Below, one piece after another: positions 7,901 to 45,600 of a stretch of DNA of 64,000 nucleotides. Numbering within the stretch: position 1 is the first letter of the stretch; every line of letters begins with the position of its first letter. The notes beneath the pieces were generated by a model. That model was given only the letters and a program-made list of their open reading frames with translations. It was not told the origin of the DNA and searched no databases. Source of the stretch: Asterias rubens (Eukaryota); NCBI RefSeq assembly GCF_902459465.1, contig NC_047083.1, positions 1,488,001 to 1,552,000 on the forward strand. Reading direction: 5' to 3'. The position numbers and the translations under genes are program-made.

Positions 7901-10900
7901 TCACAGGGCGAGGAAGCAGACCAGGACTTTCTCTTATCTCGTAAAAAACTCTGAAGGTTTCCTTTGGATGCGAACTCGAAGATCAAGCAGAAAGGCTCTT
8001 TGAGATTAAGCGATAAAGATTATGAAAAGAATGTTACACAACACCCGGAGCCAACGACTTTACGTTTCACCCGAAGGACGAAGCATCGTGGTTTTAACAG
8101 TATGGCTTAAAGACACATGTTTCACCACTGGGACTCGAACCCACACTCTGCTAGTCAGGGGTGGATTTCACAGAACTTAGGACTAGCCCTAGGCAATGCT
8201 AAGAGATAGGACCAGTCTTAAGTTAGGATGAGTTACTGGTCCTAACTTAGGACTGGTCCTATCTCTTAGCATTGCCCAGGACTAGTCCTAAGTTAGGACT
8301 ACCTTTGTGAAATCCACCCCAGAATACCAGAGCTTGAGACAAGTGCGCTTGACCGCTCGGCCACGACATGATGTAAGCACTAAATGGGTTCCCCTCTCAC
8401 CCTGTGCAAAGATCTGCATTATAATACACCTGGATGAAGGGAAGCAACTTATGGTTAGGTCTGATGGACGAGCGCACAAACATATGAGATTCGAGCCCAC
8501 CTTTCAATGACTATTGCTTTAAGAACTTGAGACTTATGTCAGAGACGACTTAACCACAATCTGATAAAATACAAATTACCTTTATCCGTACAGCAACCCA
8601 GCAACTCTATGATGTGTGGGTGCTGTTCAAGCGTCTTACACACATCCAGTTCCTTCATGAAACCTGACACGTCATTAGATGACACCGAAGCTGTGGAAGC
8701 AGTTTGTAAATTCTATATTAGAATGATACTGTTGATTTCAAGAAGAAAGATGATAAGAATTGGGATCTTATCAACTTCTTCTGATAGCGCCCTCCTTTGA
8801 ATCATAAAATGACAAGTGTTGAGTATTGAGTTTTGAGAGTGTATTGAGCCCTACCTTTAAGCATCTTCACAGCTACAGTGTGTTTCTTGCCATCTTCTAA
8901 GATGCCATCTGCAATCGCCATGTACACCACACCAAACGACCCCTCGCCAAGAACATTCAGCATCTTGATTCGCTCCCGGGGAAAGTTGTCCCTAAACGTC
9001 TTGGGTTGGTTGAGAATGTCCAGTGACACCGAACATTTCTTCGACAGCCTCTAAAATCGGTAAAAAATAAAGAGACTCAAACTTGTGATCGAGTTTTCAG
9101 ATCGCTACGACTACCTCACATTTCCACAACAATTTGCTCCAGGACTATACTTAAGACGAGCAAGGTTTTAAACTTTAAGACTATACCTACCGTTGCTTTC
9201 AGAGTAAGTCATTTTAAAGGAGCTCTAGATTAAAGGAACACGTTGCCTTGGATCGGTCGAGTTGGTCGTTGAAAAGCGATTGGAACCGTTTTTTATGGAA
9301 TCCATATGATTAGAAAGATATTTTAAAAGTAGAATATAATGATCCACACAAGTATCACTCGAAACTGCGTGGTTTTCCTTTTACCTCGTCGACATATACA
9401 CGGTCGGCCATTTATGGGAGTCAATTGTTAGTTCCCAAAGTAAAAGGAAAACCACACAATTTCGAGGCAAATGTGTGTGGATGATTGTATTCTACTTTTT
9501 AAACATCTTTCTAACCATATGCATTTTATAACAAACGGTTACAAACGCTTTTCAAAGACCAACTCGACCGATCCAAGGCAAGGTGTTCCTTTAAACACAA
9601 TGTTTATCAACAAGTTGTACAAGTTACTCCCCACTAAATACCATGCAAAGCTTGAAACATCACTCAGACTGCTCAAGTGTATTTTGTGTGTCGATGAGTG
9701 AGACCGGGATTTGAAAAATGGAAAATGTTTTTTGTAATTTGTTTTGACTGGCTGGCAGTTTTTGTTTACGCGGAAAGTATCAAAAATGGGAAGCGTAGTA
9801 GTAATCTGACAAATATTGAGACTAGATTAAGCTATTAACATAACCCGATATCTCCAAAAGAGAATCCCTACCTTTTTTGATATGACGCTTAGACGACTCA
9901 GATCTGTGACGTCACGGGCAGGGCTCCATTTGAATTTGATGGTCTTGCATGCACCGTATACAGCGAATGCGCAAATTAAGAAAACGGCCAGGGCTAGTAT
10001 TGCCGCCACAGAGAGTAGTATCAAAATACCTGTAAAGGTTAACATGAGTTGAAAAACCAATAGGAGACTTTCCAACACTAGGTGGCAGCAGACATACCGG
10101 GTAAATTTCCATTGTTTACGTAGTTCTGAACATGCGCATAATTCTGAGAACAATGGATTTACCCGGTAAGTCTGCTGCCCTCTATCGTCCCAGAAAGTCT
10201 CCCATTGAAAGAAAGTGCAGTCGAACCTCTGAATTTGGCATTGTGGTGAAAGTGCTTTACCAACAGAAATATATTTGGCTAGTGCGGGATTCGAACCTCC
10301 AAGATTTTAGGTTTGAGATTATGGCCTGGGATGGTGCAAAGTCCCACTTTTCTGTTATAAACAACCCTACCCAATAAGCCACTTCGGAGTTCCAGCTGCG
10401 CATGTCTGTTACTGCTGACAACGCATGTTGTCTATCTCCAATAACCTTTTGACAACACCAGCGGGTATTGTCAAAAGGTTGCGTGAGATAGACGAAACCC
10501 GTAGTCAGCAGTAACATACATGCGCCACTGACATTCCGAAGTGGCTTGTTGCCATTACACCCGCTGACTAATGAGCAGTGCTGGGGATGTGTCCTTGTTT
10601 GGGTACGAGGTTGTTTAGTGTGTCAGAGAGGAGAGATTTTGGAAAGTTGTTGGTTTGACAACAATCGATTGAAACTAAATAGTTATTGACAACATGTCTG
10701 GTGGTGTAGATGCTTTTCTATAACGTATTCGATGTTTTGGATAACTACCAAGATTTTCACCCTCGTTCAGAATATGGCAGCGCGCCATGTCGTGCCCGCC
10801 GATTACGAAAAAAACAAATGGGAACAAGGTTGAACAGTCCTACACTCACTCCTTTCTACGGCAACAGTGACTGTTAACTTCTGGTACGTTTTGTTGTCAG

Positions 10901-13900
10901 GGTACAATACGCTGCACACCAGTCGTTTCCCATTGTAATTAGCCTGTGCCCTGAGTGTGATTCTGCTCACTCCGTTCCAACCCCCGTCATGCTCAGATTG
11001 TGATTCTGTAATTAAGAACATTACATTGTATCTCCACCATGCAAAGTTTCAAATTCTACTCAGAATGTACATGTGTTACTGCAAACCTTTCTCTATCGTA
11101 TTACCACTGTGCAAAGTTTCAAATTCTACTTATGTACATGTGTTACTGCAAACTTTACTTTATCGTATTGCCACCATGCAAAGTTTGAAATCCGTGTTCG
11201 TGGTGTTACTGCAAACCTTACCATATCGTATTACCACTATGCAAAGTTTCAAATCCATGTACGTGGTGTTAGTGCAAACCTTACTATATCGTATGTCCAC
11301 CGTGCAGTTTCAAATCCTACTCATGTACATGGTGTTACTGCAAACCTTACTAGATTGTATCTCCCCCATGCAAAGTTTCAAATCCTACTCATGTACATGG
11401 TGTTACTGCAAACCTTACTAGATTGTATCTCCCCCATGCAAAGTTTCAAATCCTACTCATGTACATGGTGTTACTGCAAACCTTACTAGATTGTATATCC
11501 CCCATGCAAAGTTTCAAATCCTACTCATGTACATGGTGTTACTGCAAACCTTACTAGATTGTATCTCCCCCATGCAAAGTTTCAAATCCTACTCATGTAC
11601 ATGGTGTTACTGCAAACCTTACTAGATTGTATCTCCCCCATGCAAAGTTTCAAATCCTACTCATGTACATGGTGTTACTGCAAACCTTACTATATCGTAT
11701 GTCCACCATGCAAAATTTCAAATCCTACTTATGTACATGCGGTGTTGCCGCAAACCTTATGTTAATCATATTTCCACCATCCAAAATTTCAAATCCTACT
11801 TACCCTGTGTTGAATCTGGAATGTCAATCACGTCGCCATCTTTGGAGGTTATGGCCCATCGGAACCCGTAAGCCTGACTCGACGACAGAGACTGGCAGGT
11901 GAAACTGTAGACCCCCCATAAGACAATTGTCATGCCACAAGTTGTACCCCTGCAGGCACCAGACTCTGTCGTCATGAAAACGGTTTCAGGCGGATCTAGT
12001 AAAAAGTGAAACAAATTATAAATATTTCAGCTTGTCTACACTGACGCGTGCCTAAAAGTTCTTTCACATGAGAGTAATTTAGCAAAGGTCCCTTGCTAAA
12101 TTGTAGCATGGTTGTAAGATTTTGCAAATGTACCTCGTGTGAAAGGACAACAACTTAGCCTACACTGTCCAAGTGCTCTGCAAAATCCCGCTAAACATTG
12201 CTACATTTTACAACCATGCTAAATTGAAGCAAGGGACCCCAGTTAAATTGATGCCGTGTGAATAGCACTTAAGTGACTCAAAAACGTACCAGACAGTTGT
12301 CAGTTCTCAGCATTAATGACTTAAAATAATGAGTATTTTGTGTCGAGTTGTGTGTACAGATGAAGGTTTAGGGCTTTTTCAAAGCGGTGAGTTCCTTTTG
12401 GGCCAAGCCTTACAGGCTCCGTTCAGCCACGTACACCTAAAGAAACGGCACATTTTCAAGATAACCGACGGAAAGGCTCATCATTTTTCTTTCAGTTTTA
12501 TTTGGAGGACGCAAGTCTTTGCCGAATGATGATGATGATCAAAATAAAATAGCATGCACTGACAATTGAGAGTGACTTATTTTTGCTACTACTGATTGAG
12601 AAAAAACAACTGGAGGGTTCAAACTTACAGTTGATGTTCAAAGTGAGGTTGGCACTACCGAGGTGACTGCCAATGAATGATAACAGTCTACACTCAAGCA
12701 CTGATCCAGATTGATTTCGAGTTGGAATCAGATCAAGGGAAACTGTTTCACTATCTCTGTCGAGAGAGTAAAAAAAAAAAAACAGTGAAATGCAAAGATG
12801 AAGAATTCAAGATTACAAAAATACATTTCTTTCCATACTCTCATAAAAGAATAACGACAGTTATTACGGACTAAAAGCAACACATATCTTTAAGTAACAC
12901 TTTATAATACATATAAATGAATAGAGTATACTCTATACGGGGCCGTTTTGGTAAGCATGAGATTGTAAAAAACAGCCAGACAGACAAGAAAACAAGACAA
13001 CCAGACAGACAGACAAACAGACAAAAGGACAGATGAACATAAGACATGACACAGCGAGTTCGTAATAAAAGCGACAAAATGTTCAAGCTGAAAATAAATA
13101 AGACAAGTACTGAATAGATGGATGTGGTTCAATTACATAGGATGGGAAGCTAAGATACATAATGGGAGATAATGTTACAAACAAGCCATGAGTTTTTTTC
13201 TACCAACTTTGAGGCTCCTCATCCTGGCCACAGATGTATATGCTATTTTCACCACGTGATTGACAAAATGTTGTTTGTTTGTGTGTTAAGATGGTCTTCC
13301 CATCAAGGGAACTCGTGAAACTCCTATCACATACAAAATTTGGGCTCAATCGGTCATCGAAGTTGCAAGAAAATAATGAGAAAAAAAAGCCATTGTCGGA
13401 CAAATCTGTGTGCTTGCAGATGCCTAAATAAAAGACTTCAGGTCCGAATATTTTAGTGAGAGATTCCATTTTTCTCAAACACTACATCTACTTAAATAAG
13501 ACATCTAGCTGAAATAAGACCGGCCAAGCCCCACCACCAAATTCCCGGGGGTAAATTTTCAACATGGCACTCACTGAGAATCTGGCTGGTTCGATGATTG
13601 TATTTCCCCATCAATGTACAAAATCTTTGAACCGGTACACCCCTCGCTGCTACAAAAGAACCGCACAGGTAGACCCTCTTCCAACACCGAAGTGTTCATC
13701 GTCAACTGCAACTCACTGCATGGGTCTGAGTTAAATTAAAGAGAACACACACATAGAAAATAGTACTTTTAGTCAATGAATAATTGTCAAAAGGACAAGT
13801 TGATTTCTTTCCATCCGAAAACTCATTTATCATACGGAATTGACCTGGGCCCATTTATACAGAGCTGCGTCAGCAGAAATATTGCTCAACAGTTGTCTGA

Positions 13901-16393
13901 AATTGGTTGGTAATTTTGTTTTTATCAAGGAAGAAATTGCATTCTATAAGCAAATTTTTGTGCTTAGCAGCTCTATGAAACTGGACCCAGGATACAAGTC
14001 ACAAGTTGTAAACATGACATGTCATTTGTGCTCTATGTTTGTCAAATTGTTCTAATGGGGTGCCAGTTATAGTCCGGCCATTCAACCTTAAATTATTAAT
14101 TAAGTTTGTGTAATAATACGAAAGCATAATTTCAGCTGAAGTTTCAACTTCCATCTTTTTGTGTGTGTGGGTGGGTGTTATAATGTTTGTAAAACTTTGG
14201 TTAAAACTAGCTAGTATGAAGTTAGCAAATCTTGCTGGAAATCTGTTGTTTGCAATGCCGTGTTATATAGACCTTCCTCATATAAAAAATCGAGGTTGGA
14301 TTATGATAGAAAGAAAAAAAACTAAGCAGAACCACAACAGATGTACTTCCTTGAACAGATTTTTGGAAAACAGGAATTGTTCATTTTCGATTGCTTTGTT
14401 TTTCATGTTGACTTTGCTCCTCGAATGAATCTCAATTTGTCGATTTAAAAAATATAGTCATATTTGACTGATAGTACTAGAACTCAAAAAATAGTTAATG
14501 GCCTGACGTTTCGACCCAAGCAAAGTCTTTCTCGAGGGCAAAAGTACTAGAACTCTTTACAAAAAATACTTCATTAAAAATAAAATTGACACGTTACATC
14601 TCTCAATAAACTTATTAGTTACAAAATAAAAAAGCAAAAAAGCAAAAAAAATACCTGTGAGATTCGGCCTTTGTCCATGGGATTGCTGAACAATGAGTCC
14701 TGAAAAGAAAAAGAAAAAAAAGGGGTTTCTGTCGTCATAATTGAAGGGTCTGATTTCTTTTTTGTAGGACAAAAACACAATGTCTACCGATTCACATTAG
14801 ACTGACACGGTTTGAAGATAATGATGGTAGAAAGCTTCCCTTAAAATCACTTTCTGAGGTGCTGTAGTTTTTGAGAAATGAGTAAAACAAGTCACGAAAA
14901 CTATTTTAGTCTGAAAACGTATTTTAGTGACATTGTTTACTCATTTCTCAAAAACTACATCTACCAGCAAGTAATATATTTTAGAGGAGCCTTCTAACAT
15001 CATTATCTTCAAACTGTGTGAGTTTAATGTACATCTGAGGACATTGTGTTTTATGTTACAAAAATTACCCATATCCTTTTTATAAGACTTGTTAGACAAA
15101 ATTAATCCACGTGGTTGTACAATTATGTACATGGAAAAAACACCTCCCGCTTTAGTTCTCCATATCATGATGGTATGACATTGCTCTAGAATTGCAAGGG
15201 TCGTGGGTTCGAATCCCATCCGAGTAACATGCCTGTGATATTTTTTTCACAGGACTCGGGAAAGTACTGAGTATACAGTGCTAACACACATCGGTGTATG
15301 GGTAAAAACCAAAATTAATATTCTTTATCCCCGATACAAATTTAACATATATCATATCATCTACGTACATCCACATGCTAACTGTGATAATGGGGTCATT
15401 ACCCACTTTAAGATTTTTCAAATGGTGGTAGGCTTTAAACACAGGTTAATTTACTGGTTTTATTGACGAAAATATACATTGGCACAACAAATGACAAGCA
15501 TCGGAGAGCTGATGATAGTTATACAACTTTACAACTTTCAAAAAAACGACTCACTATGAAGTAACGTAGTTTTTGAAAAGAGATATTTTCTCACTAAACT
15601 TTTTGAATTTGAGAAAGACTTCAGGCCTTTCTCAGACATCTGAAGGCACTGACAATTTTGTAACAAGGGTGTTTTTTTTCTTTCATTATTTTCTTGCAAC
15701 TTCGATGACCAATTGAGCTACAATGTTCACAGGTTTGTTATGTTACGCATATGTTGAGATACACCAAGTAAGAAGACTGGTCTTTGACAGTTAGCAACAG
15801 TGTCCAGTGCCATGTACTGTAACGTACACGTAGTCCTGAACAAAGGCCTAAATGCAAAGGAAAAACCAGCTCTGACTAAGATGGGAATTTGTTTTTACTA
15901 GACTTTAAAGGCAGTGGGCACTATTGGTAATTGTCAAAGACTAGCCTTCACAGTTGGTGTATCTCATATGCATAAAATAACCAACCTGTGAAAATTTGAG
16001 CTCAATCGATTATTGAAGTTGCGAGATAATAATGAAAGAAAAAACACCCTTGTCACACGAAGTTGTGTGTTTACATGGTTGATTTCGAGACCTCCTCAAG
16101 TTCTAAATCTGAGGTCTCGAAATCAAATTCGTGGAAAATTACTTCTTTCTCGAAAACTATGGCACTTCAGAGGGAGCCGTTTCTCACAATGTTTTATACC
16201 ATCAACTTCTCCCCATTACTCGTCACCAAGGAAGTATTTATGCCAATAATTATTTTGAGTAATTACCAATAGTGCCCACTGCCCTTTTGTGGACATCAAG
16301 TACAACAACGGACATTAAACACACCCACATGTATAGTTTCTACTCACCTATTGAAACCGCCAAAACGAGAAACAGTTTTCCGTGATTGGTCAT
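4942..16393 (-). CDS. Gene B: 2-Ig receptor tyrosine kinase (FGFR/RET-related kinase domain), about 594 aa
   Basis: Exons 16393-16348, 13725-13575, 12756-12629, 11995-11804, 11005-10850, 10029-9872 (TM), 9050-8855, 8690-8580, 7997-7828, 7233-7111, 6408-6297, 5591-5495, 5191-5092, 4986-4942. All GT-AG, phases compatible, total 1785 nt. Motifs [36 protein letters not shown]. The signal-peptide exon is the least certain. Confidence 0.9.
7514..7551 (-). ncRNA. Minimal type-I hammerhead-ribozyme-like motif (Penelope/retrozyme type)
   Basis: Minus strand TCTC-CTGACGA-T-GAC-tagagcac-GTC-GAAAC-GTT-GAGA: core boxes, stem II GAC/GTC, stem I TCTC/GAGA, palindromic ACGT at helix III. Confidence 0.55.
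8158..8320. mobile_element. TIR element with internal ttaggact/gtcctaa repeats (relatives at about 5940-6082, 21185-21333, 28540-28720, 35920-36160, 60440-60560)
   Basis: ggggtggatttcac ... gtgaaatccacccc; inserted inside a tRNA-like SINE. Confidence 0.8.
9230..9594 (+). mobile_element. TTAA-flanked MITE family 3
   Basis: ttaaaggaacacgttgccttggatcggtcgagttgg ... ccaactcgaccgatccaaggcaaggtgttcctttaa; long TIRs. Confidence 0.9.
10058..10207 (+). mobile_element. About 150-bp TIR MITE (copies 29968-30116, 46324-46472)
   Basis: caataggagactttccaacactaggtggcagcagac ... gtctgctgccctctatcgtcccagaaagtctcccattg; the 10058 and 46324 copies are nearly identical. Confidence 0.85.
11026..11800 (+). repeat. 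Minisatellite, about 11 copies of a 68-bp unit, filling an intron of gene B
   Basis: Unit ttgtatctcccccatgcaaagtttcaaatcctactcatgtacatggtgttactgcaaaccttactaga; period 68 (caaaccttac at 11341 and 11409); central copies near-identical. Confidence 0.95.
15175..15345 (+). mobile_element. tRNA-derived SINE (copies about 2385-2500, 51660-51790; tails at 22140-22305)
   Basis: B-box ggttcgaatccc followed by a conserved body gagtaacatgcctgtga..gggaaagtactgagtatacagtgctaacacacatcggtgtatgggtaaaaa; no complete cloverleaf. Confidence 0.8.
15490..15810 (-). mobile_element. MITE family 1 partial copy
   Basis: Reverse-orientation body ending in agaagactggtctttgacagttagcaacagtgtccagtgc. Confidence 0.75.
15905..16288 (+). 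mobile_element. MITE family 1 copy
   Basis: ttaaaggcagtgggcactattggtaattgtcaaagac ... ccaatagtgcccactgccc. Confidence 0.9.
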
Positions 16394-16762
16394 CTTACCT
16401 CCGGAGTCAAACTGTTTGAAATGGTCTTTTTACGCAGTTGTTGTAATAAGTTGTACCGTTGAATTTACGTCGTTTGTTATTTTTTGTATCAAAAACCATG
16501 TTGGAAAAACAAATACAGCTAAAAAGAAACTTTGTTTCATTTTCTGTTGATAATTAATACAGAAAGAGAGAAGAAAGTAAAACAGCACTCGAGGAAGTGA
16601 GGGAAAATATTAAATTAGAAGTGAAATTATAAACTTGACTTGCATCGAAAGTGGTGGATCAAATTTTCGCGAGGTCGAGTTTCTTTGGTCGAAAAAAGCC
16701 TCGGTGAGGAAGGTTTTTGTTTGGTTTCATTTATTCTGGTTGTACAGTCAGGGACACTGGCT

Positions 16763-18393: not shown

Positions 18394-18772
18394 TTAAAGA
18401 TACTGGACACTATTGGTAATTGTCAAAGACCAGTCTTCTCCCTTGGTGTATCTCAACATATGCATAAAATAACAAACCGGTGAACATTTTGAGCTCAATT
18501 GGTCATTGAAGTTGCGAGATAATAATGAAAGAAAAAATACCCTTGTCACACGAATTTGGTATTCAGTGTGCTTTCAGATGCCGATTTCGAGACCCAAAAT
18601 TGTAAATTTGAGGTCTCGAAATCGAATTCGTGGAAATTTACTTCTTTCTCGAAAACTACGTTACTTCAGAGGGAGCCGTTTCTCACGATGTTTTATACTA
18701 TCAATATCTCCCATTACTCCTTACCAAGTCTAATTATTTTGAGTAATTACCAATACTGTCCACTTCCTTTAA
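18394..18772 (+). mobile_element. MITE family 1 copy
   Basis: ttaaagatactggacactattgg ... ccaatactgtccacttcctttaa. Confidence 0.9.
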
Positions 18773-19261
18773 GACTAAAACTAAACAACGAAGTTTGGTA
18801 CGGAGGATTTGAGGAAATCAATGAATATTTGGTTTGCGGTATTACATCATGCGTGTATCTACTTGCCAGGTAGAGTTTGTTCTCTAATAGAGAATTGTCT
18901 TTCTTTATTCTACTAGTTTGTTACCCTACCAATTCTGTAGATGCTTTACATTGCTTTATACATGTTGAAATCATAAAGAGCTTTTGTTTTTCAGTCAAGT
19001 GTGTAAAGTTAGTTGTAAGCTTATCTTACTATAAACAGGTAATATTGTTTATTTATTTTAATTTTCCTTAAACAAATTGTCTTAAAGCCATTATACACTT
19101 TCGGAACAGAAAAAAAAAAGTTCACAAATTTACAAGTACCTTACAGGGTTTACGAAGTGTCCAAAAGGTATTAATTGTCATAAAGGATGTCAATGTGACA
19201 TGAACTTGTACTGTTTTGGATAATAGTCAACAAATTGTCAACAAATTATCTGTGTTTAATC

Positions 19262-20130
19262 TCACACCGTGGCACTTGAATGTCCATTTTCTTCCTTTTT
19301 CTTCTCAATCTCATAAACCTGGACACGCTTATCGCTATACAAAGTCACACCATTCAACCCGAAGAAGCATAAACCTTGCAGATCTTGGAAGCCAGTCTCG
19401 AATGTATGAAGCTTTTCAAATACCTCGACATCGTATGCGAGTATTTGAACACCGTTCACCACGTAGAGTTGGTGGTTGTGCATTACGATTTCACCCAGCC
19501 CTGTTTCTTGAGCAGGAGAAATTGTTATGCAATCTCGGATTTTCAACATGTTGAGACAACCAGGAGTTCTTTTAAAGGTGTACTTATTTATGGTGTCTTT
19601 TCCGTTCACGACAAAGAGATGTTTCCAACCGTATGCCGCGATATTTTGCAGCTCTTTATCGATATCTAATGTGTACTCTGCGCGGGTTTTGTTGTGTATT
19701 TCATACATCAGCAATCTTTTACCATCGAGTTCGCCCACAAAGATAGCACCAGCGCCATCAACGGTGACCTTTGGGGAGGTGAACTTAGTCAACTCGACCG
19801 GCTCTCCGTAATTGCCAGAGTTCATGTCAACATATAGCAAACTTGTTTTGACTTTTTTGTCAGTTGTTTTTAAAACCACTATTAAAGTTTCGCTTTGAGG
19901 GTGTAAGACTATGTTCGTCACATTTCCTGAAAACTTGTCTTTCGTGAAGATTTCTGGTCTAGCTTCCTGTTTGTTTGGGTAGCGGACGACTGCTTTCGAT
20001 GTTGCAAGTAAAAGGCCCTGACTATCACTACCAACCACCCCCACAATGTCTCCTGTTTGTTCGGATCCTTGGAATAAACCGCTGTAGTCTTCGAGGCTAC
20101 GTCTTGAAGACCATTGAGTATTTCCCTCAG
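19262..20130 (-). CDS. Terminal intronless exon of gene A encoding a beta-propeller (NHL/6-blade-like)
   Basis: Acceptor ttcatttcatttcttttcag|CTGAGG is in frame with ORF 19262-20044. Blade-like PKVTVDGAGAIFVGELDGKRLLMYE; repeated beta-strand pattern; C-terminal LQGLCFFG..VTLYSDKRVQVYE. Confidence 0.75.
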
Positions 20131-23100
20131 CTGAAAAGAAATGAAATGAAAGTTATGAAAGACGAGCTATAAGGGCCCAATTTCGTAAAGCCTGTAAGCA
20201 CAACAATTTGGATTTAAAACTGGATTACCAACCAAATTTCCATTTGCTGCATATTGCGTGATACTGGTATTCAGCTGTTGTTTGCTTATCCTGAAAGTCA
20301 CGTGGCAATTTGGTTGGTAATCCTGTTTTTATCGAAGGAAGAAATTTCATGTTAATGCTGAGCAAATTTGTGTGCTTACCTAATACCAGGCTGTATGAAA
20401 TTGGGCCAAGGTCAATACAATACAAAAGAAAATATATATAGTGCTCTTTATACAAAGCTGTATCACTGCGCTTTGCATTGACACTCTTGGTAGTTACAGA
20501 AAATAATTGTTAGCATAAAAACTTAATTGGTAACGAGTAATGGAGAGCTGTTGATAGTATTAAGCATTGTAGGAAACGGCTCCCTCTGAAGTAATGTAGT
20601 TTTTGAGAAAGAGGTGATTTCTCACTCGAATATTAAAATACTTCAACTGAAGCCTTTTTATTATGCATCTGAAATTTATATAACAATGGTGTTTTTTCTT
20701 TCATTATTCTCTTGCAAATTCGATGACCAATATTGATGACCAGCCTAAGTTTTCACAGGTTTGTTAATTTATGCATATGTTTGGATACACACTAAGTTGG
20801 AATCTGGTCTTTGACAATTGTCAGAGGTCTCCAGTGCCTTAAACAAGCAGAATAACAGTGTATAGCAAAAGTAAGGGAGACGAAATGAGAAAAAAACAAT
20901 GAGGAAAAGCGGAATAGAATTCTGTTCAAACTTCCTGACAATTTGTGTTTTGAAACCAGAAACGAACACAAGAGGACCGAGTTAAATTACGTATTTTTGT
21001 GAAAATCGCGCTTTGCTTATATTCAACAAAAACTAAAGATTAAGCATTAAAGCTGATACATAAATGGTAAATTGAACAAGGTGTTTCTAAGACGATCGGG
21101 AAGTGAGAGATACGTTTCAAAACGTGTGCTCTGTTTTCTTGAAGACACACAAAGCACACCGATCGACACGTCCGGACTTAACGGTATCTCACTTAAAAAT
21201 AGAGGCAATGCTAAGAGATAGGACTGGTCCTAAGTTAGGACTAGTAACTCATCATAACTTAGGACTGGTCCTATCTCTTAGCATTACCTAGGACTGGTCC
21301 TAAGTTAGGACTACCTTTGTGAAATCCACCCCAGGACCCTTACCTGTGATATCTTCCATTTCTTTTGGGTTAATTTCCATGAAGAGTCCCGTCTTCTCGT
21401 CCGGTGTACCTATTAGGAGAGGGGGTAACACCAACATCGTTTAAAAGGGTAACAACTTAAAAGGTTCATTTTATTCGGTAAAATAACAGACAGTAAACAA
21501 ACCAGGAAGAATTAAAGGAACACGTTGCATTGGATCGGTCGAGTTGGTCTTTGAAAAGCGTTTGTAACCATTGGCTATAAAATGCACATGGTTGGAAACA
21601 TGTTTTAAAAGTAGAATACAGTAATCCACACAATATTATGCCTCGAAATTGCGTGGTTTTCCTCTTACCTCATCGATTAACACGGTCGGTCATTTATGGG
21701 AGTCAAAATTTACTCCCATAAATGGCCGACAGTTTTAGTTCGCAAAGCAAAAGGAAAACCACGCAATTTTAAGGCAAATTTGTGTGGATCATTGTATTCT
21801 ACTTCTAAAACATCTTTCCAACCATATGCATAACAAACGGTTACAAATGTTTTTTATACTGCCAACTTGTCCAATCCAAGTGCCCCTTTAAAGCTTTTTT
21901 TAATTAAAACAAATCGACAAAACCAGAATCTATGTTTACCTGTGGGTTGGTTTCTCAGTAGTTCATGTCCTTTGTACTTGACGATGCGTCGTTGAGGTAG
22001 AAACACTCTGCACACGAAGTATGCTAATGCTATAAAGCATACCAACAAGATGACCGCTAGAATGATGAAAATTGTGGTTGTACTGGTCGACTTGGATTCT
22101 GGCTGCTGAGCTATAAATGACATGGGCCCAATTTCAAACAAAAGTTTGCTTTATAATAAATGTTAAATTTTCATCGGGGATAAAGAATATATATATATAT
22201 TTTTTTACCCATACACCGATGTGTGTTAGCACTGTTTTTTTCTTTTTCTTTACATGACTCGGGAACCTACTGAGTACACAGTGCTAACACACATCGGGTG
22301 TTTGGGTAAAAAAAAAAAAAAATTAAAAATTTGCTTAGCCTAAAATTTCTTCCTTGATAAAAACAGGATTACCAACCAAATTCTAATTTGTTGCATGTTG
22401 CTTCTTACTGGTTTTCAGCTGTTGTTTGCTTGTCGTGAAAATCACGTGGAAATTTGGTTGGTAATCATGTTTTTATCAAGGGTGAAATTTCAAGCTAAGC
22501 ACATTTTGTGCTTGGCAGCGCTTTGAAATTCGGTCATGGTATGAACAGAAACATTTCACAGTGATTTCCGGTTAATTCACAATTAAAAAATGTAGTCGCG
22601 GCCAAAGGCCGAATAAAAACTTTTTGTACATGAACACATTAAAAACGTTAAATACGAAAACAAGATTGGAACATAACAGAGAATGCAATACGAGGTCATA
22701 AGGAAATCAAAATTAAAATTAAGAGAAGACAACAACACCTCCATAGACCTTTTCGCAAATACCATTGCGCAAGCGCCAACTATTGAATGAGGTGCATGCT
22801 GGTCTAGCTAGCGACCAACTTGGTAGCTAGCTAGACCAGCATGCACCTCATTCCACGTCTATTGTGCGCGTACCGAGTATTTGCGATAAGTTCCATGTGC
22901 GATGACAGTGAAATCAGTCAACGTTTTATATAACTCGCCATTGGCAAACGCTAGGTGGCGCCCTTTATTCTGAGTCACCGTATTTCACTTCAACTCACCT
23001 GTGGCAAAGATTTCAACAGCGGTAGCGGACGACCCGTTGTGGATTGCTACTCCCTTAGCAACGCACTTGAACTCACATTTATCGTCCAACTTCAGATCCA

Positions 23101-24006
23101 AGGCGCCAAAATGCGCCCTTTTCGTCACTCGATAAGTTTTGGAGAATACGTCGTAGGTCGACCGCTGATTGGACGTGAATAATTCCATTGACTGATTACT
23201 ACAACAGCAACCAATGAAAGACCATGTTAAATCAGGGTTCGGGTAAACGTCATCGACCGAACAGTTTAGTATCTGTTGTTTCTTTATATCGACTTCGGAA
23301 ACTGAAGCTTTTGTTGAAGGGTTCCACCATATCACTGGACCGGAACGCAAATCTGAAAATTAAAATTTATTAAAATCGAGTAAAAGACTACTTATAGGCC
23401 TAGGCAGGTTTTTTTATATTATTATTTTTATTGTCAAGAAACCAGTTACCTCACTTGATGTGACTCAACACAAGCACACAATGGCGACCTGTAAACATTT
23501 GTCTATTTTTGGTCATCGAAGTTGCAAAACAATCATTAGAAGAAAAAACACCTTTAATAGTTGCATAGTATTTTGTGCTTTCATGTCTGAGAGTCGGAAC
23601 ACAAGTCTTTACCTTTAACAACAACTGTGACGTCAACTGATTCAATGCTCTCCGCACCTGACCGGATAACTCGGCACCAGTATCGTCCACTGTCGGTCGT
23701 GTCGAGTTGTCCAATGACCAGGCCAAAGCCATGTGAGACCGAGTAGCGGTCACTCTCTGTAAAGTTCTGGCCGGCGCTCGGAGCTGAGTAGCGTAGTACC
23801 AGCGATTCCTTTGCTACCTCCCACGTCTCACCGATAAACCAGTACAGAAGACTCGGTCTCTCGGCCGGTGGGAGACCAACACATGGGATGGGAACATGGC
23901 TGCTGTTCTTAGAAAGTAAGATGTGTTGGTTTTCGGCAGCAGCCACCCTTCCATGGCTTGTTATAGAAAGGAAACACGCGGCCCAGAAAGCAAGTAAAAT
24001 TGCCAT
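19262..24006 (-). CDS. Gene A: type I membrane protein, signal peptide-Ig-Ig-TM-cytoplasmic NHL-like beta-propeller, about 617 aa
   Basis: Exons 24006-23613, 23352-22999, 22110-21940 (TM TIFIILAVILLVCFIALAYFVC), 21409-21344 (66 nt), 20130-19262. All phase-1 GT-AG, total 1854 nt open. Ig motifs IPC..LLYWF..DSGRYWC and LNC..YPNPDLTW..FKC. 5'UTR acceptor at 24032. Confidence 0.85.
20173..20407. mobile_element. gggcccaatttcat-type TIR element (relatives at about 13855-13990, 22125-22545, 24192-24433, 26298-26516, 31030-31160, 31582-31745, 45150-45390, 62466-62656)
   Basis: Ends gggcccaatttc / gaaattgggcc; shared core aaacaggattaccaaccaaat and gcttagcatg. Confidence 0.8.
20480..20842 (-). mobile_element. 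MITE family 1 copy (degenerate)
   Basis: Body matches other copies in reverse; ends ggtctttgacaattgtcagaggtctccagtgccttaa. Confidence 0.75.
21512..21891 (+). mobile_element. MITE family 3 copy (a left-end fragment also at 55091)
   Basis: ttaaaggaacacgttgcattggatcggtcgag ... ccaatccaagtgcccctttaa. Confidence 0.85.
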
Positions 24007-26619
24007 CCTGACTCTCTGATGAACTATACTTGCTGAAGAACAAAAGGGCGGGAACTGTGGAAGTATTACTGCGGAGGAAAAGGGTTATTAAAGATGAGTT
24101 GTTAACTTACTCTTCCCTTTGGTCTTAGTCCAATTAGCCTTTCTAATTGGCATGGTCGGCAATTGACACACAATTATGATTGACAAGAACAGGGCTCAAT
24201 TTCATGGAGCTGCAACGCACACAAATTTACTTAGCATGATTTCTTTGCCTTAATACAAACAAGATTACCAACCACATTTCCACGTGATTTTCAGGACAAG
24301 CAAACAACAACTGAATACCAGTAGCAAGCAATGTGCTACAAACGGAAAATTGGTTGGTAATCCTGTTTTTTATCAAGGGAGAAATTTCATTCTTAGCAAA
24401 ACTCGTGCTTAGCAGCTCTATGAAATTGGGCCCTGTTTGTTGGAAAGTTAGTTGGCGATCGACGGGGCAGCTTGAATTTAAAACATGAAATACTACAGTG
24501 CCTTCATGCACAGTCAGAGTGTCATTGTGGTGTGCTTTTTAATAGTGTAGACCAAACGTTATTATAAATGCTATAGATTCTGTTTTGCACTCTGACGGCT
24601 GCCTGTATTATTTTGTTGTTTGTGACTTTGTTCCGGGTAGGCTACATCCGTGAACTTGCGTGCCCATTACTGTGGTTTTGAATCATTGGTCATGTGCTAA
24701 TGTGTATTTGAAATCTTGCCAATTCATCAAGGATCTGTCGCAAATTGCATATACCACTTCCATGTTCTTTTTTTATTTTTTAATTTTTTTTATTAACATT
24801 GGCCCTTGCCTAGTTTCAAGAATCTTGTATTCACAGGTTGTGAAGATGTGGTGTGTTTAAATTTGTTTTTAGTTGAAACCAAGTTCATAATAATAACGAA
24901 ATACTATTAGTCCCCGATGATACGATGACACGATTGGGATTTCGCACTTCTCTGCTTTGTGATTGGGTCTTGTTTCGAATTTTCCCGATTTTTTAGAAGA
25001 AAGAAATTGCCTATGAGTATGATTGTAGTCTAATAAAAAAATGATAAAATGAAACTGACCCTGCAGAGATTTCGTGAGTGTCGTGTTCAATTCGTGCAAA
25101 CCAACGGACATGACTTTCAGCTCGATGAATCTGTGCTCTAACCCCTAGCCGGCCCTATGGCCTGAACTAAACAGATACAATGACACACCCGCGCATGCGT
25201 CAACACTGTGTACATGTACGTATTGGGAAAAACCTGGGATTTCCCAGATGTGCAATATTTACTTAGTGCTGGTAGGCTGTATGAATTAGCGGCTTACATC
25301 AACGACTACGGCTTCCCGCGTCATCATGCGTTATAGTATAAAGTACTTCCTTATCCACAAACTTAGCAACAGACGTAGCCGTAACTGTATTCGGCAATTC
25401 GGAGCACTTGCATCTTTTCCCTGGAGACCATGTAGAAATATTTTCGATACCATGTGGACATATTTTTAAAAATGGCAAAAACTAAAAGATTGTCCATAAG
25501 AGACTTTGTAAAGATTGGGATCCTGCACAAAGAAAATGTGTACAAAGTCTATACGGGGAAAATGTTCAGTACAGCTTACTGTGACAAAGGGAAAATAACA
25601 ATCCACATGGATACATATTTCAGTCTTCTACAATTGCATACCTCATACCTCATACTCTTATGTGTGCTAGAACGAACTTATATTATAACACACTGTTGTG
25701 ATACATGTTCATGACTGAATTGAACACCGTACTATTTTATTTCTTGCTCCATGTTATGAGTGACTTTCTACGCTTATACTTTCTACGGTTACTACAAATA
25801 CGCAGACAGAAAAAAACTTGTTATTGTGCATTCTGCATAAACGTTCAGATTAAAGAGTTCGGCAACATGACCTTTTGTTGATACAAACACTAGTAACTGA
25901 AAATATCCCTGCAAATTATCATCGAGTCATTATATGAACCTACCTTTAGCACCACGCCTCTTTTTAAATGGTTGCCGTACGCCTACGCCGTAATGTTGCA
26001 CTGCAAACCATGAATAACATGTACTGAACATGTACAATAATAGAAGTACATGTATAGCTGCCTACATTAACTTGCACATGGATATCTGCCTGTGCATAAA
26101 CAGTATACAGATCTACACGTAAACCGGTCGAGGGCGAAAGGTCAAACTTGTGCATGATATTAAATGTCTGTATGGATAGTCAATTTTGTATGAGACGCCT
26201 CATCTGGCAAAAAGTACGGTGACATGTTTTGATAAATGTCACCACTTTAAATAAATATACAGCCTTCTGTCAATTTCTCACTACAGACAAATGACCAGGG
26301 CCCAATTTCATAGAGCTGCTTAGCATGAAATTTTTGCCTCGATAAAAACAGAATTACCAACCAAATTTTCACGTGATTGTCAGGATAAGCAAACGAAAGC
26401 TGAACACCAGTAACAAGCAATATGCAACAACTGAAAATTTGGTTGTTAATCCTGTTTTTATCAAGGAACAAATGTCATGCTAAGCAAATGTTTGTGCTTA
26501 GCAGCTCTATTTGGTCCTGTTCCAGTTAGCAGTGTTGGAATGGAGTTGGGGGTTGTTTCCTTGGCCCTGATGACAATTTTGCTGACTGTCAGTGTCCGTT
26601 GAAAACTTTGGTTTACACA

Positions 26620-27813: not shown

Positions 27814-30800
27814 ATGAGCGTGACGGAGACGAAAGGCTACCGGGAGGGAGGCTGGGGTTGGCCCGTTGTATTTTCCGTCTTCCTGTCCCAGTTTATACTC
27901 TACGGAAACCTCAAAGCAACCGGTGTTCTCATCACTCATATCCACCAGGATTACAAAACCAGTCTGTGGACGATTGGTCTGATTAATTCACTCTATTATG
28001 CGATGCAGTTTTTACTGTGTAAGTTTTTGGAAAGGTTTGCGGTAACACCATGTTTAATGGCTACACTGTAAAAAAAAAAATAAAAAAAAACCCGTAAAAT
28101 TTAAGGTGCTTACTGGCAAGCTATATGGTGCCAGGTACAGTGCAGTGGAAGTTTTGTAACTTGTGCCTTGAAGGGGTTGTTTGCAAAACTTCCACTGTGA
28201 AATTTACTGCACTTTACCTAGTTGCCAGGTAAAGCACCTTAATTTTTACGTTTTTTTTTTTATTTTTATATATTTTTTTACAGTGATCTATAAATGAGTT
28301 GGGGTGGTTCTGAAAAGAACCGTTGGTTGTATTTGAATATTGTGTATTAATTTTGTTGTGCATGTTTTGTTATTGCTGTCTTAAGCCTTGGAGAAAGAAT
28401 TTTTTTATTTTTTTTAAATTTTCATTTATACCATCGGCCCATTATATTTGGTCGGCAAGTTGTTTGCAACAGCTACTTTTATTTTCTTACTTTTTTTTTT
28501 TAACTACAAATAATTTGTCATTGTGTGTACTTTTTCAGAATGCTTTAATCATTAGGGTGTGGGTCAAGCAGCCGACTCACGAAACGCTAGGATTAATCTC
28601 GGGCTAGGACGAGTAACCCGTCATAATTTAAGATGGGTTCAATGCGTCCTACGTCTATGGATGCAGAACTGAACTTGTCCAAAGATTAAATCTAAAGCTA
28701 GAAAGAGTTTGGTGAAATCGTCGGCTGGGAAAACCTCGTCATATTCTTTTCTCAGACCATTATTCAAAAATAAGAACTGTGCCGCCCAAACACAGTTTAC
28801 CCGTAAAACAATCTGCCTTCCGACCGCGCCCAGTGGATCCAGCAGTACATCGCCACGGAGTGATAAGACGCCACTATAGACGTAGTGACCTCTGACGTCA
28901 CACGAAAACCATAACATGATTCGCGCGCATACCGCCGGGCAAAACCTTTGTGTTTTGGCAGCCAGCTAGAAAGAGTACGCAATCTTACAATGATCGACTA
29001 CGCAACTCGGTGCCCGGCGAAACATGACGTATAATATAGTGTTTTGTCAACAGAGGGCGGTTTGAATGTAAACATAGGTCACATCGTCTATGTTAAGCCC
29101 TTTTCACACTGTATCCCCGTGGAATACATCCCCGGTGATGCCTCGGGTCTTTTTTACCCCATGGTTTACCCCGACGCACTTACTTTCACACTGTATCCCT
29201 ATTTCACGGGGTTCTGGTCGCACGTTCCAAGAACACTTATAGAGGTTTTTTTTGTCAGGAGTAGGGGTGGGTGGCTATTCCCCGGGCAGACAGAGGGCAG
29301 ACCAGGGGTAAAGCAATCACAGTGTGAAAAGGGTGACCGTTATTTCCAGGGGGCAACCCCAGGAGTAGTAATGTGAAAAGGGTTTTATTGTTGTTTTAAA
29401 GAAAGTATTTTTGTTTTATTCAGCACCATTTCCTGTGGCCGTCTCCCATCGGGTCGGTGTCCGTCCAGTCATTGTAACTGGTGGTATCTTGAGTGGTCTT
29501 GGACTCGCCATCGCATCGCAGAGTCACAGTGTCCCCGTCTTAGCTGTTGCCATGGTTGCACTTGCAGGTAAACAAAAATAATATTTAACTCAAAAACTCA
29601 CAAAAAGGCCGTGTCCGAAACGGAGTCTTCGGCTACAGTTACGGCTACTGTAGTTCTCCTTTCCTTTAAAATGGGTAATCTTGACGCTAGGTGGCAGCAT
29701 ATTAACTGATATTTTAATATCATTTATAAGCTGTCACCGACGATCAGAGCATACTGATCGAAACGTCGAGTTAATCCAACGGTTCTTTTCAGAACCACCC
29801 CAACTCATTTAGAGATTGTTATTACATGGTGTTACCGCAAACTCTTCTATATCTTATTTCCACCATGCAAAGTTTCAAATCCTACTTAACAATTTAACTA
29901 TTCACTTCACAGGAATGTTTTTAAGAGCTGGTAGTTAAAGTCTCCATTTTGCTTTAAGACTCTATCTAATGGGAGACTTTTGGGACGCTTGGTGGCAGCA
30001 GACTTACCAGGTAAAATCAATTGTTCTCGGTAATGTGCGTGTGCTCAGAACTACGTAAACAATTGAAATTTACCTGGTAAGTCTGCTGCCACCTAGCGTT
30101 CCAAAGTCTCCCATTGAATGTTATCTTTTCCGAAAGTGTTTGTGTTTGATTTCTTCAACTATTAATCTGGCTCTTTGATTGATCAGGTACGGGTGCAGCG
30201 TGTGTGAAGGAACCACTGTTTTCCCAGATGGCCCTCTACTTTCACGAGAAGTACGCCTTCGTATCATTCCTTGCTAAGATGGGTGCCCCGTTCGGAATGA
30301 TGGTCTACGGTCCAGCAACGCAAGCACTGACTGAATACTACGGTTGGCGTGGAGCTCTGCTCATCCTCGCCGGGCTGAGCTTCAATCTCACGGTATGCGG
30401 TTTGCTCATTTGCCGCTCATCAAGCTCAAGATTCAAACGAGCGCCCTCTGTTGCCCTAAGGATGTCGGATTATCAAGACTTGGACAGGTTAGATGAGGAA
30501 GATAGGAGGCTTTATTATTGCTGCAGTCAGTTAATCTCAACCATGGGATTAGCTGTATTTAAAGACGTACGGTTCATACTTATAACTATGATAAAGCTGT
30601 TCAGCGGATTCGGCTATGCTGGGATTGTCATCTACATGGTTCCGAACGCGTTGTCTCTAGGGCTAGACGCGCACCAGTCCTCCTTCGATACAACAGCGTG
30701 GGGAATTGGCAACCTTCTCGGGCTCTCCTTCGCTACGTTGGTGATGCACACAAAAGTGCTATCCGAATGTTCAGTGATGGGGATTGGGACAAGTCTAGCT

Positions 30801-31394
30801 GTCATTGGATATGTGCTGGATCCTTTTATCGCATCCTTTGTAGGGCAGATGGTCGTGACTGCCATTATAGGGGCCGGGACAGAGAGTCTGTTCCTAGTCT
30901 CCATTATATTAACCCGGTACCTGACTAATGCTGATAACAGAGTGGTCTTTCTTTACACGTGGCAAAACTTCATCACAGGACTGTCTTACCCCGTCTCTGG
31001 ATTTGTATCAGGTGAGATATTCATTCATGCTAAGCACAAACATTTGCTTAGCATGACATTTCATCTTTGTTCAAAGTAGGATTACCAACCAAATTTTCAT
31101 TTTTTGCATATTGCTTGATACTGGTATCCAGCTGCTGAAAGTCACGAGGAAACTTGGTATAATCTAGTGTCTTGAAAAGGCGTATAATTGAAGGCCCGTT
31201 GAAATGATCAAAACACCAACCCAATGAACATTCATAGTTTAAATAACGCATTTTCTCGTTTTACAGGATATCTGTTCGAGATAACTGGAGACTTCAAGGT
31301 TACCTTCTTTGTGTATAGCGGCACAATGCTAGTAACGGGAATTAGTATCATACTGTACTATGTTTACACCAACTATAAGAAGTCAGCCAAATAA
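27814..31394 (+). CDS. MFS transporter, SLC16/monocarboxylate-transporter-like, about 433 aa
   Basis: Exons 27814-28018, 29424-29567, 30187-31011, 31267-31394 (1302 nt, phase-1 introns). N-terminal EGGWGWPVV signature typical of SLC16, many TM helices, YFHEKY and GWRGALLILAG motifs. Confidence 0.9.
28874..29090 (+). mobile_element. Dispersed TIR element; an inverted copy occupies 1-190
   Basis: Ends catagacg / cgtctatg; 28880-29086 is the reverse complement of window positions 1-190. Confidence 0.8.

Positions 31395-32444: not shown

Positions 32445-45600
<13,156 letters not shown>

Follow-up and report, generated by a model that had tools for sequence, protein, structure and literature searches.

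The question raised by this locus is whether the minus strand of a 64-kb stretch of the Asterias rubens genome (64,000 nucleotides, hereafter the window) encodes, between positions 19262 and 24006, a true membrane receptor in which Ig domains are followed by a transmembrane (TM) segment and a beta-propeller, and whether this gene, gene A, is related to gene C, which has a similar layout in the same window. With a probability of about 0.8, we consider gene A to be a genuine, transcribed and sea-star-conserved receptor of the type Ig-Ig-TM-propeller, with a propeller that is probably of the NHL kind; it is probably a paralogue of gene C and has a putative docking role.

The rebuilt gene comprises five exons on the minus strand, whose coding parts (394+354+171+66+869 = 1854 nt) form an open frame for a product of 617 aa. 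Exon 1 (23613-24068) contains a leader (24068-24007), the ATG at 24006, the signal peptide and a V-set Ig domain, with 394 nt being coding. Exon 2 (22999-23352, 354 nt) codes for a second, constant-type Ig-like domain, and exon 3 (21940-22110, 171 nt) for the stalk, the TM helix and a basic juxtamembrane stretch. Exon 4 (21344-21409, 66 nt), whose counterpart in Patiria miniata has 69 nt, provides a predicted cytoplasmic linker, and exon 5 (19262-20130, 869 nt including the stop) provides a further 28 aa of linker, the entire propeller and the C-terminus. All introns start with GT, end with AG and are in phase 1, and the terminal TGA at 19264-19262 is the only stop in the frame.

The exon joins of this model are found unchanged in RNA contigs of two sea-star species. 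In run X1, contig record 5 passes through 24070-23613, 23352-22999 and 22110-21937, continues with 63 letters and ends with 20130-19867; the 63 unplaced letters correspond to the 66-nt exon 4, with 3 letters being ambiguous. Record 16, from run X3 of the sister species, covers 24070 to 19251 with joints identical to those of X1. Since these contigs span junctions 21940/21409 and 21344/20130, both junctions occur in transcripts, which connects the tail exon with the Ig-TM exons. The open spliced frame of 1854 nt, in phase 1 throughout, which an earlier note had read from the letters, is thereby confirmed, and independent transcription of 19262-20130, which would have spoken against it, was not what the RNA contained. 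The contigs break at acceptor 24070/24069 and have further letters beyond it. An upstream alternative coding exon (25060-25111, minus strand), located by tblastn of the N-terminus of P0004 and by sequence reading, has an ATG at 25111, 17 codons plus one base (phase 1) and a GT donor at 25059-25058; it joins to 24068 and puts 38 aa ahead of the signal peptide in isoform X1 of A. amurensis. No tRNA genes were found in the 64-kb window.

From its N-terminus, the protein consists of a signal peptide, the V-set Ig domain, the second Ig-like domain, one TM, a linker and a tail of 288 aa. The public annotation, 'uncharacterized protein' with the V-set domain only, misses half of it. The signal peptide (23935-24006, minus strand; MAILLAFWAACFLSITSHG...), with a putative cleavage site read from the sequence, has the same N-terminus in the orthologues P0001 and P0003. 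The V-set domain (23620-23904, minus strand; residues 35-129) is recognised on exon 1 by Pfam model PF07686 with 31.2 bits versus a cut-off of 26, which places gene A in the immunoglobulin superfamily; P0001 and P0003 also carry PF07686 in precomputed tables, and Cys42, Trp56 and Cys111 of the domain are invariant among the orthologues. The second Ig domain gave weak C2-set and C1-set Pfam hits, the best being C2-set_2 'CD80-like', its profile matches in the PDB were nearly all Ig domains, and it has four conserved cysteines. A hydropathy scan located a single TM helix at about 22075-22004 (residues 262-285), adjoined on its juxtamembrane side by the basic stretch RVFLPQRRIVKYK, and the helix and its flanks are kept in four orthologues. 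Three N-glycosylation sequons, all of them in the ectodomain, are conserved in the four orthologues, and the tail has no such conserved sequon. On sequence features only, namely a hydrophobic N-terminus, one TM and basic residues after it, gene A most likely encodes a type I single-pass membrane protein, with a predicted topology in which the propeller is cytoplasmic.

A linker of about 75 residues separates the TM from the six-bladed propeller (19289-20047, minus strand; tail residues ~28-280; AF2 model m52f88909cafb). When the four orthologues were aligned, AF2 yielded six groups of four strands with a pTM of 0.71 and a pLDDT of 70-87 across residues 30-244, blades 1-5 being confident and blade 6 having low pLDDT; the structure is based on an alignment of only four sequences, and the prediction from a single sequence was uninformative (pLDDT 39). 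Foldseek searches with the model returned propellers only, with a probability of 1.0, and at least 500 PDB matches at E<=0.001, the top ranks being all propellers. The VIA comparison, whose matches were likewise all propellers, gave Z scores of 18.8 with the NHL domain of Mei-P26 and 18.3 with that of Brat, and TM scores in the Atlas were 0.65-0.71 to NHL/SGL/YncE-type propellers, although scores of this kind are no guide to whether a propeller is of the six-bladed NHL or the seven-bladed WD40 type. Fold searches in AFDB clusters and the Atlas retrieved generic propellers and no protein with the same architecture. As modelled, the tail is a beta-propeller, just as the earlier note had read it.

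At the sequence level, a profile of four tails (A1) matched only NHL-class chains in the PDB, with marginal E-values from 1.8e-6 to 1.5e-3 (Pizza6, 1.8e-6; PknD, 7e-4; TRIM71, 8e-4; Thin, 1e-3; also TRIM3), and all these matches pass via one blade, residues 114-148. This is blade 3 (19685-19789, minus strand; xxVTVDGAGAIFVGELDGKRLLMYE), the sole blade with a recognisable NHL repeat motif. It includes the segment PKVTVDGAGAIFVGELDGKRLLMYE at about 19774-19700, which had been aligned by eye with the NHL blade of gene C and does align with it. Pfam found no model, NHL included, at E <= 10 on the gene A tail and no NHL repeat at that level in any of the four orthologous tails, and by Pfam the tail does not belong to the NHL repeat family PF01436. 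Conserved residues of the tail include KYxFKR, LQGLCFFG and YDVExF. The protein ends in A-T-V (19265-19273, minus strand), replaced by E-T-V or V-L-V in the orthologues (alignment A1), with the terminal Val being invariant; we take the x-T-V to be a possible PDZ-binding end.

Gene C (50703-57434, plus strand) encodes an ectodomain of three Ig domains and, in its tail, an NHL propeller that is more canonical than that of gene A. The first Ig domain of gene A matches the first Ig exon of gene C (E 3e-8), and the second one matches the third (53658-53993; tblastn E 1e-8), these exons lying 28-38 kb away. Four cysteines of the membrane-proximal Ig domain are common to both genes (alignment A3). 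The middle Ig domain of gene C has no counterpart in gene A, and the suggestion that the ectodomains of such receptors vary in domain number holds, with two domains in A versus three in C. Comparison of the tails by hhalign gave E-values of 1.2e-4, over 190 collinear columns, to 6e-4, with the C side being a single sequence; the score of 32.4 was reached by none of 120 shuffles (mean 14.6, maximum 27.5). With BLASTP, the A and C tails did not match significantly (E 0.15), the tail of P0001 reached E 0.013, and that of the P. miniata orthologue P0002 reached E 2e-4 in the same register as hhalign. Searched against the PDB, the C tail matched Thin (3.7e-9) and TRIM71 (1e-6). The proposed homology of the two tails is thus borne out by the collinear profile alignment, the shuffles, the P0002 match and the shared TRIM-NHL structures, and gene A joins gene C in an Ig-TM-propeller family by its homologous ectodomain and tail in the same order. 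Because the Ig domains match and the tails are collinear, both matching TRIM-NHL propellers, gene A is likely a diverged paralogue of gene C.

The orthologues of gene A, all of them predicted proteins, are 90% (A. amurensis XP_071809721/20; P0003/P0004), 68% (P0001) and 34% (P. miniata XP_038072515; P0002) identical to it. In P. miniata the gene is divided into the same five coding exons, with phase 1 throughout, and synteny of the neighbouring exons is weak. A word-indexed protein search with the tail by itself gave no match, but its length filter leaves out full-length relatives, and this result does not bear on their absence. A full-length profile search (A2) found two known members and missed P0002, and its result is no measure of a narrow distribution. 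Across the gene, dN/dS was 0.39 (p = 5e-16). It was 0.27 in the first Ig domain, 0.35 in the second and 0.47 in the tail (p = 1e-5 for the tail on its own), and each of these four values is significantly lower than 1. Selection, for which the earlier note had argued, is thereby shown. By these estimates gene A evolves fast and yet is constrained.

Four other readings of the locus were weighed against this one. It is unlikely that the two architectures are convergent, that is, that related Ig ectodomains captured propeller exons independently from soluble NHL genes. This reading would gain from the whole propeller lying on one phase-1 terminal exon in both genes, which is friendly to shuffling, and from the HMMER scores of the A1 HMM, which are higher for canonical NHL proteins (21-22 bits) than for the C tail (12 bits); the former, however, gain from six repeated motif matches. 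Against it, the collinearity of the tails extends over five blades and up to the C-terminus, P0002 and C are similar not only in the NHL motif but also in the blade that follows, with an identical RVEINI at the aligned position, the parts come in one order in both genes, with the TM exon after the Ig part, then one or more short exons and finally the propeller exon, and the genes are about 27 kb apart. Since the HMMER score of the C tail is only 12 bits, we make no claim from the tails on nearest relatives: taken by itself, tail sequence is no proof that, among NHL domains, the A tail is closest to the C tail and vice versa. Somewhat less probable still is a membrane-tethered enzyme, SGL/lactonase-like or another six-bladed hydrolase. 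Language-model and structure look-alikes do include SMP-30/gluconolactonase/LRE families, and Pfam matches SGL weakly to the C tail (E 0.0013), but on the A tail SGL is not significant (best E 0.12, in one of the four orthologues), and sequence matches to solved structures are only to non-enzymatic NHL propellers (TRIM71, Thin, TRIM3 and the PknD sensor).

Gene A might also be drifting to loss in the Asterias lineage, being transcribed, barely constrained and open in frame only as a leftover. Coding differences listed among the RNA contigs were nonsynonymous in 17 of 22 cases and synonymous in 5, which is close to what neutrality would give and may mean that constraint within the Asterias lineage is weak; towards A. 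amurensis, residues differ by about 10% at a nucleotide divergence of about 5%, and a rough dN/dS from contig difference counts is 0.5-0.6. However, the list covers only some of the differences, an excess of nonsynonymous changes among polymorphisms is common, four taxa and all RNA contigs compared have an intact frame, indels are multiples of three, and the dN/dS values given above, that of the tail included, oppose a loss of constraint, which makes such drift very improbable. Hardly credible is the last reading, in which the tail exon serves mainly as a separate soluble propeller and the joined form is minor read-through. It could appeal to the word depth in run X2, 84.6 for the tail contig versus 33.5 for the Ig contig, and to an in-frame GTG/ATG-free ORF of 260 aa, yet the tail ORF lacks an opening ATG close to its 5' end, the X1 and X3 contigs link exons 3, 4 and 5, the X2 tail contig itself has 128 letters past acceptor 20130 that fit exons 4 and 3, and all annotated orthologues are full length.

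If gene A is the receptor preferred here, its function would most likely be that of a recognition receptor docking partners in the cytoplasm via its propeller. The Ig ectodomain may recognise a ligand on another cell or particle. The propeller, tethered to the membrane and apparently free of catalytic signatures, might act as a docking platform that gathers cytoplasmic partners where the ligand is engaged. Such partners would be proteins or, by analogy with TRIM-NHL proteins, perhaps RNA, and the C-terminal x-T-V may in addition bind a PDZ scaffold. Fast evolution under constraint is consistent with a role in recognition, for instance in immunity, in telling self from non-self or between gametes. 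More speculatively, and with rather less confidence than even odds would warrant, there may be a sea-star-specific IgSF receptor family that signals via a tethered NHL propeller and evolves fast for immune, allorecognition or gamete roles. If so, an NHL propeller would take the place of a kinase, ITAM/ITIM, TIR or death domain, a new coupling of receptor to cytoplasm. Soluble NHL proteins act in mRNA regulation or with ubiquitin-pathway partners, and surface recognition might then be linked directly to either.

Among known systems, the TRIM-NHL proteins (Thin/TRIM32, TRIM71/LIN-41, Brat, Mei-P26, TRIM2/3) share with gene A a six-bladed propeller of about 270-290 residues and are the best sequence matches to solved structures for its tail, with VIA Z scores of 18-19. 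RING, B-box and coiled coil are all missing from gene A, whose N-terminal 330 residues hold the signal peptide, both Ig domains, the TM and the linker instead. It also differs from them in that its propeller follows an Ig ectodomain and is held at the membrane, and in that a single blade retains the NHL motif. PknD of Mycobacterium tuberculosis and the teneurins are also single-pass membrane proteins with an NHL-type propeller. Their propellers are extracellular and form the sensor or adhesion part, whereas that of gene A is predicted to be cytoplasmic, with the Ig domains outside. The JAM, nectin and CD80-like families resemble gene A in having a signal peptide, a V plus a constant Ig domain, one TM and a hydrophobic C-terminus that could bind PDZ domains. 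Their cytoplasmic tails are short and unstructured, in contrast to the folded propeller of 250 residues in gene A, and no sequence relationship to these families was found beyond the Ig fold. To our knowledge, a folded cytoplasmic beta-propeller is not among the usual signalling tails of Ig-type receptors, and our literature search found no description of an Ig receptor with one.

Gene C is like gene A in its signal peptide, Ig ectodomain, one TM and predicted cytoplasmic six-bladed NHL-type propeller on a single terminal exon. It differs in its three Ig domains, in its opposite strand, in a tail identity of about 21%, and in a propeller that is clearly TRIM-NHL-like by sequence, while that of A is recognisable through one blade only. 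That a second, so diverged gene retains its exon structure between Asterias and Patiria and is under purifying selection shows that the layout has been maintained and is no one-off accident of prediction or splicing. Gene A adds to gene C a second Ig-TM-propeller member and conservation across sea-star orders, and the two make up a small, testable receptor family for work on echinoderm immunology and cell recognition.

The minus strand of 19000-24300 was read and the proposed model of gene A was rebuilt by script. The coding part of exon 1 (24006-23613, 394 nt), exon 2 (23352-22999, 354 nt), exon 3 (22110-21940, 171 nt), exon 4 (21409-21344, 66 nt) and exon 5 (20130-19262, 869 nt), all on the minus strand, join into a frame of 1854 nt and 617 residues, whose first stop is the TGA at 19264-19262. 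All introns follow the GT-AG rule and all interrupt the frame in phase 1; the coordinates, the 66-nt and 869-nt exons, the 1854-nt frame and the phase given in the earlier note were exact. The introns hold several MITE-like inverted-repeat elements (20216-20329, 21203-21289, 21554-21854, 22191-22507 and 22785-22853, the last with 34-nt arms that are 97% complementary). At these MITE-like stretches, and also at 18700-18890 and at 20419-20800, word depths in the RNA contig sets reached 10^4-10^5, which marks them as high-copy repeats.

RNA contigs of four runs were compared with positions 18700-24400 of the window; in RNA-type runs, the content of the window was about its exonic share. Record 5 of run X1 (1313 nt) covers 24070-23613, 23352-22999 and 22110-21937, followed by 63 unlisted letters and then 20130-19867. 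Since the three letters 21939-21937 are compatible with the intron start as well as with exon 4, the unlisted letters correspond to the 66-nt exon 4. Record 16 of run X3 (1933 nt), from a second organism (organism B) and 4-7% different, extends from 24070 to 19251 with joints identical to those of X1, and the tail contig of run X2 carries 128 extra letters beyond the acceptor at 20130. Together, these joints and extra letters show that the tail exon is spliced to the Ig-TM exons, and both junctions predicted from the sequence, 21940/21409 and 21344/20130, are used in the X1 and X3 contigs. All gene A RNA contigs break at 24070/24069, an AG acceptor, and this is explained by an upstream exon, as in isoform X1 of Asterias amurensis (P0004, 655 aa). 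Gene A has this exon at 25111-25060 (minus strand), with its own ATG, the first 17 residues of P0004 and an adjacent phase-1 GT donor; the 21 residues that follow in P0004 are found at 24068-24007 (minus strand), in the reading frame of the ATG at 24006. The upstream exon may or may not place 38 residues before the signal peptide.

In an exhaustive phmmer search of 1.84 billion cluster representatives with the 288-aa C-terminal tail of gene A, only two clusters were matched. The predicted orthologues are P0001 (623 aa, tail identity 66%, with an uninterrupted CDS on a contig of GCA_014845345.1), P0002 (635 aa, 34%, Patiria miniata XP_038072515.1, 'uncharacterized protein LOC119740996') and P0003 (617 aa, 92%, A. 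amurensis XP_071809721.1, about 90% identical overall), and their layout is identical to that of gene A from end to end. Public annotation leaves the orthologues uncharacterized and recognises the V-set domain alone. The coding sequence of the Patiria gene (locus L002) is split over five exons (379, 381, 222, 69 and 857 nt), all in phase 1, the same exon structure as in gene A. Downstream of it lies a receptor-kinase-type gene with Pkinase/PK_Tyr Pfam matches, which showed weak collinear tblastx similarity to Ig-like exon pieces on the window minus strand at about 10800-16660. This suggests that synteny around gene A is conserved in Patiria, and the latter region possibly holds a syntenic Ig receptor kinase adjoining gene A. 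The P0001 CDS occupies 343-2214 of contig JACSEG010001243.1 (exactly 5001 bases) without introns, and its flanks are collinear with the 5' region of the window (as far as 24174) and, past the stop, with sequence over a distance of up to 2 kb; this contig looks like a cDNA-like or transcript-derived contig, or a processed copy.

Exon 1 matches the Pfam V-set model with 31.2 bits (curated cut-off 26), and exon 2 gave weak C2-set and C1-set matches alone. A profile built from exon 2, its orthologues and the third Ig exon of the neighbouring gene C (plus strand, 50703-57434) matched almost exclusively Ig domains in the PDB (hemolin, VEGFR1, SYG-2, SIRP, MHC class II alpha-2; E 0.002-1), and four cysteines are invariant in this alignment. 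A single hydrophobic span, residues 262-285, is followed by RVFLPQRRIVKYK and is kept in all orthologues. All four orthologues share three N-x-S/T sequons, which all lie outside the tail, in the ectodomain. Span, flank and sequon pattern fit a type I topology with a cytoplasmic tail. The linker preceding the propeller carries a Y-x-x-L motif (about 20074-20085, minus strand, residues 346-349; EDYSGLF, or GDYGILF in P0001), kept in the three closer species and absent in Patiria, which may be an endocytic or phosphotyrosine motif.

The tail modelled poorly from its single sequence (pLDDT 39). With A1, the alignment of four orthologous tails, AlphaFold2 reached a pTM of 0.71 and a pLDDT of 70-87 over residues 30-244, giving an all-beta model whose strands form six groups of four; confidence in the last group is low. 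In Foldseek searches of the PDB and of AFDB clusters, all matches were propellers (probability 1.0). VIA-align Z scores were 18-19 for seven-bladed WD40 propellers and, equal in range, 18.8 and 18.3 for the six-bladed NHL propellers of Mei-P26 and Brat, and the Atlas search gave TM 0.65-0.71 to NHL/SGL/YncE-type propellers. The tail is therefore a propeller, as the earlier note had claimed; since WD40 and NHL folds score alike, these scores do not establish the subfamily. The model and the length (about 43 residues per blade) point to six blades. The A1 profile matched only NHL-class chains among all PDB sequences, namely the designed Pizza6 (1.8e-6), the PknD sensor domain (7e-4), TRIM71 (8e-4), Thin (1e-3) and TRIM3 (0.22), and every match passes through tail residues 114-148, the blade quoted in the earlier note. 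Language-model look-alikes, whose scores are leads only, lean to the NHL and SGL families. Because of these PDB matches, but with no match of the tail to any curated Pfam model, we call it a putative NHL-like propeller.

We considered whether the tail might have a separate transcript, or gene A be a decaying gene. Among the RNA contigs of the four runs on 18700-24400 there was no sign of independent transcription of 19262-20130, which the earlier note had named as one finding that would refute its model. Coding sequences of gene A and P0001 were compared by the Nei-Gojobori method, with a Fisher test for fewer nonsynonymous changes per site. The dN/dS was 0.39 for the whole gene (dS 0.50, dN 0.195; p = 5e-16), 0.27 for Ig1 (p = 3e-7), 0.35 for Ig2 (p = 1e-4) and 0.47 for the tail (p = 1e-5), in agreement with the proposal of a selected gene; against Patiria, synonymous sites are saturated. 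Change is fast at short range, with 64 of 616 aligned residues differing from A. amurensis. In a partial sample, 17 of the 22 listed coding differences among RNA contigs were nonsynonymous, equal to the neutral expectation, and the McDonald-Kreitman contrast was not significant (p = 0.18). Many amino-acid-changing variants of gene A (19262-24006, minus strand) occur among runs labelled as one organism; in the tail alone, X2 has 9 nonsynonymous and 2 synonymous changes. Residue T591 is Ala in all four runs, so that the window allele is the odd one. All seven listed nonsynonymous X3 changes match P0003, and organism B is therefore either A. amurensis or a very close relative.

Independent capture of the propeller in gene A was weighed against common descent with gene C, whose tail is clearly TRIM-NHL-like (Thin 3.7e-9, TRIM71 1e-6). 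Direct BLASTP between the two tails was not significant (E 0.15), and the A1 HMM gave just 12 bits on the gene C tail, less than on canonical NHL proteins, in which six copies of the motif raise the score. In hhalign, 190 columns of A1 and the gene C tail aligned collinearly (A 80-277 to C 40-264; E 1.2e-4); the score was 32.4 in a local rerun and 12.1 with the reversed sequence, and shuffles (n=120) had a mean of 14.6 (SD 2.7, maximum 27.5). BLASTP of the Patiria tail against that of gene C gave E 2e-4; the 85 matched residues extend from the NHL blade into the blade after it, with RVEINI identical at the aligned position. hhalign, HMMER and BLASTP gave the same register, which supports the homology and agrees with the blade line-up first made by eye. 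In tblastn of the window, gene A matched the first (51859-52170, E 3e-8) and third (53658-53993, E 1e-8) Ig exons of gene C and gave no match to the middle one, so that Ig number indeed varies, and all four cysteines are common to the membrane-proximal Ig domains. Given related ectodomains, the same order of parts, collinear tails and a distance of 27 kb, genes A and C are likely whole-gene paralogues, and their two tails may be sisters among all NHL domains. An enzymatic tail was also considered; no catalytic signature was detected in it, and all its relatives by sequence are binding domains.

Between genes A and C sits a transporter gene, a long open exon at 30204-31079 (plus strand) matching the Major Facilitator Superfamily (PF07690, E 1.7e-8). 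Outside both genes, Ig-type exons lie on the plus strand at 33788-34183 (C2-set_2, E 4.7e-5) and at 62694-63146 (an Ig-like cysteine pattern without Pfam match), and further putative IgSF genes are thus present in the window. Two nearly identical ORF starts at 39178-39520 and 42843-43235 (plus strand) indicate a duplicated segment. N runs occupy 36347-36513, 39523-40022 and 40110-40296; one copy of the duplicated ORF runs into a masked stretch, and a short kinase-like peptide lies between N runs.

The analysis demonstrates gene A and its splicing, its conservation, its Ig domains, its single TM and the fold of its propeller. The topology is inferred, and so is a mode of action in which the Ig ectodomain would engage a ligand and partners in the cytoplasm would then dock on the propeller. 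The protein ends in an invariant Val, preceded by x-T in three species and by V-L in Patiria (x-T-V and V-L-V), an end that resembles the PDZ-binding ends of adhesion receptors. Full-text literature searches gave no hit for an Ig receptor that carries a propeller, NHL or other, on its cytoplasmic side; the lack of a hit is not proof. NHL propellers occur in soluble TRIM-NHL proteins and, extracellularly, in PknD and teneurins, and the tails of IgSF receptors with two domains (V+C2) are usually short. Beside gene C, gene A is a second and much more strongly diverged member; it shows that the number of Ig domains in the ectodomain varies and that conservation spans sea-star orders.
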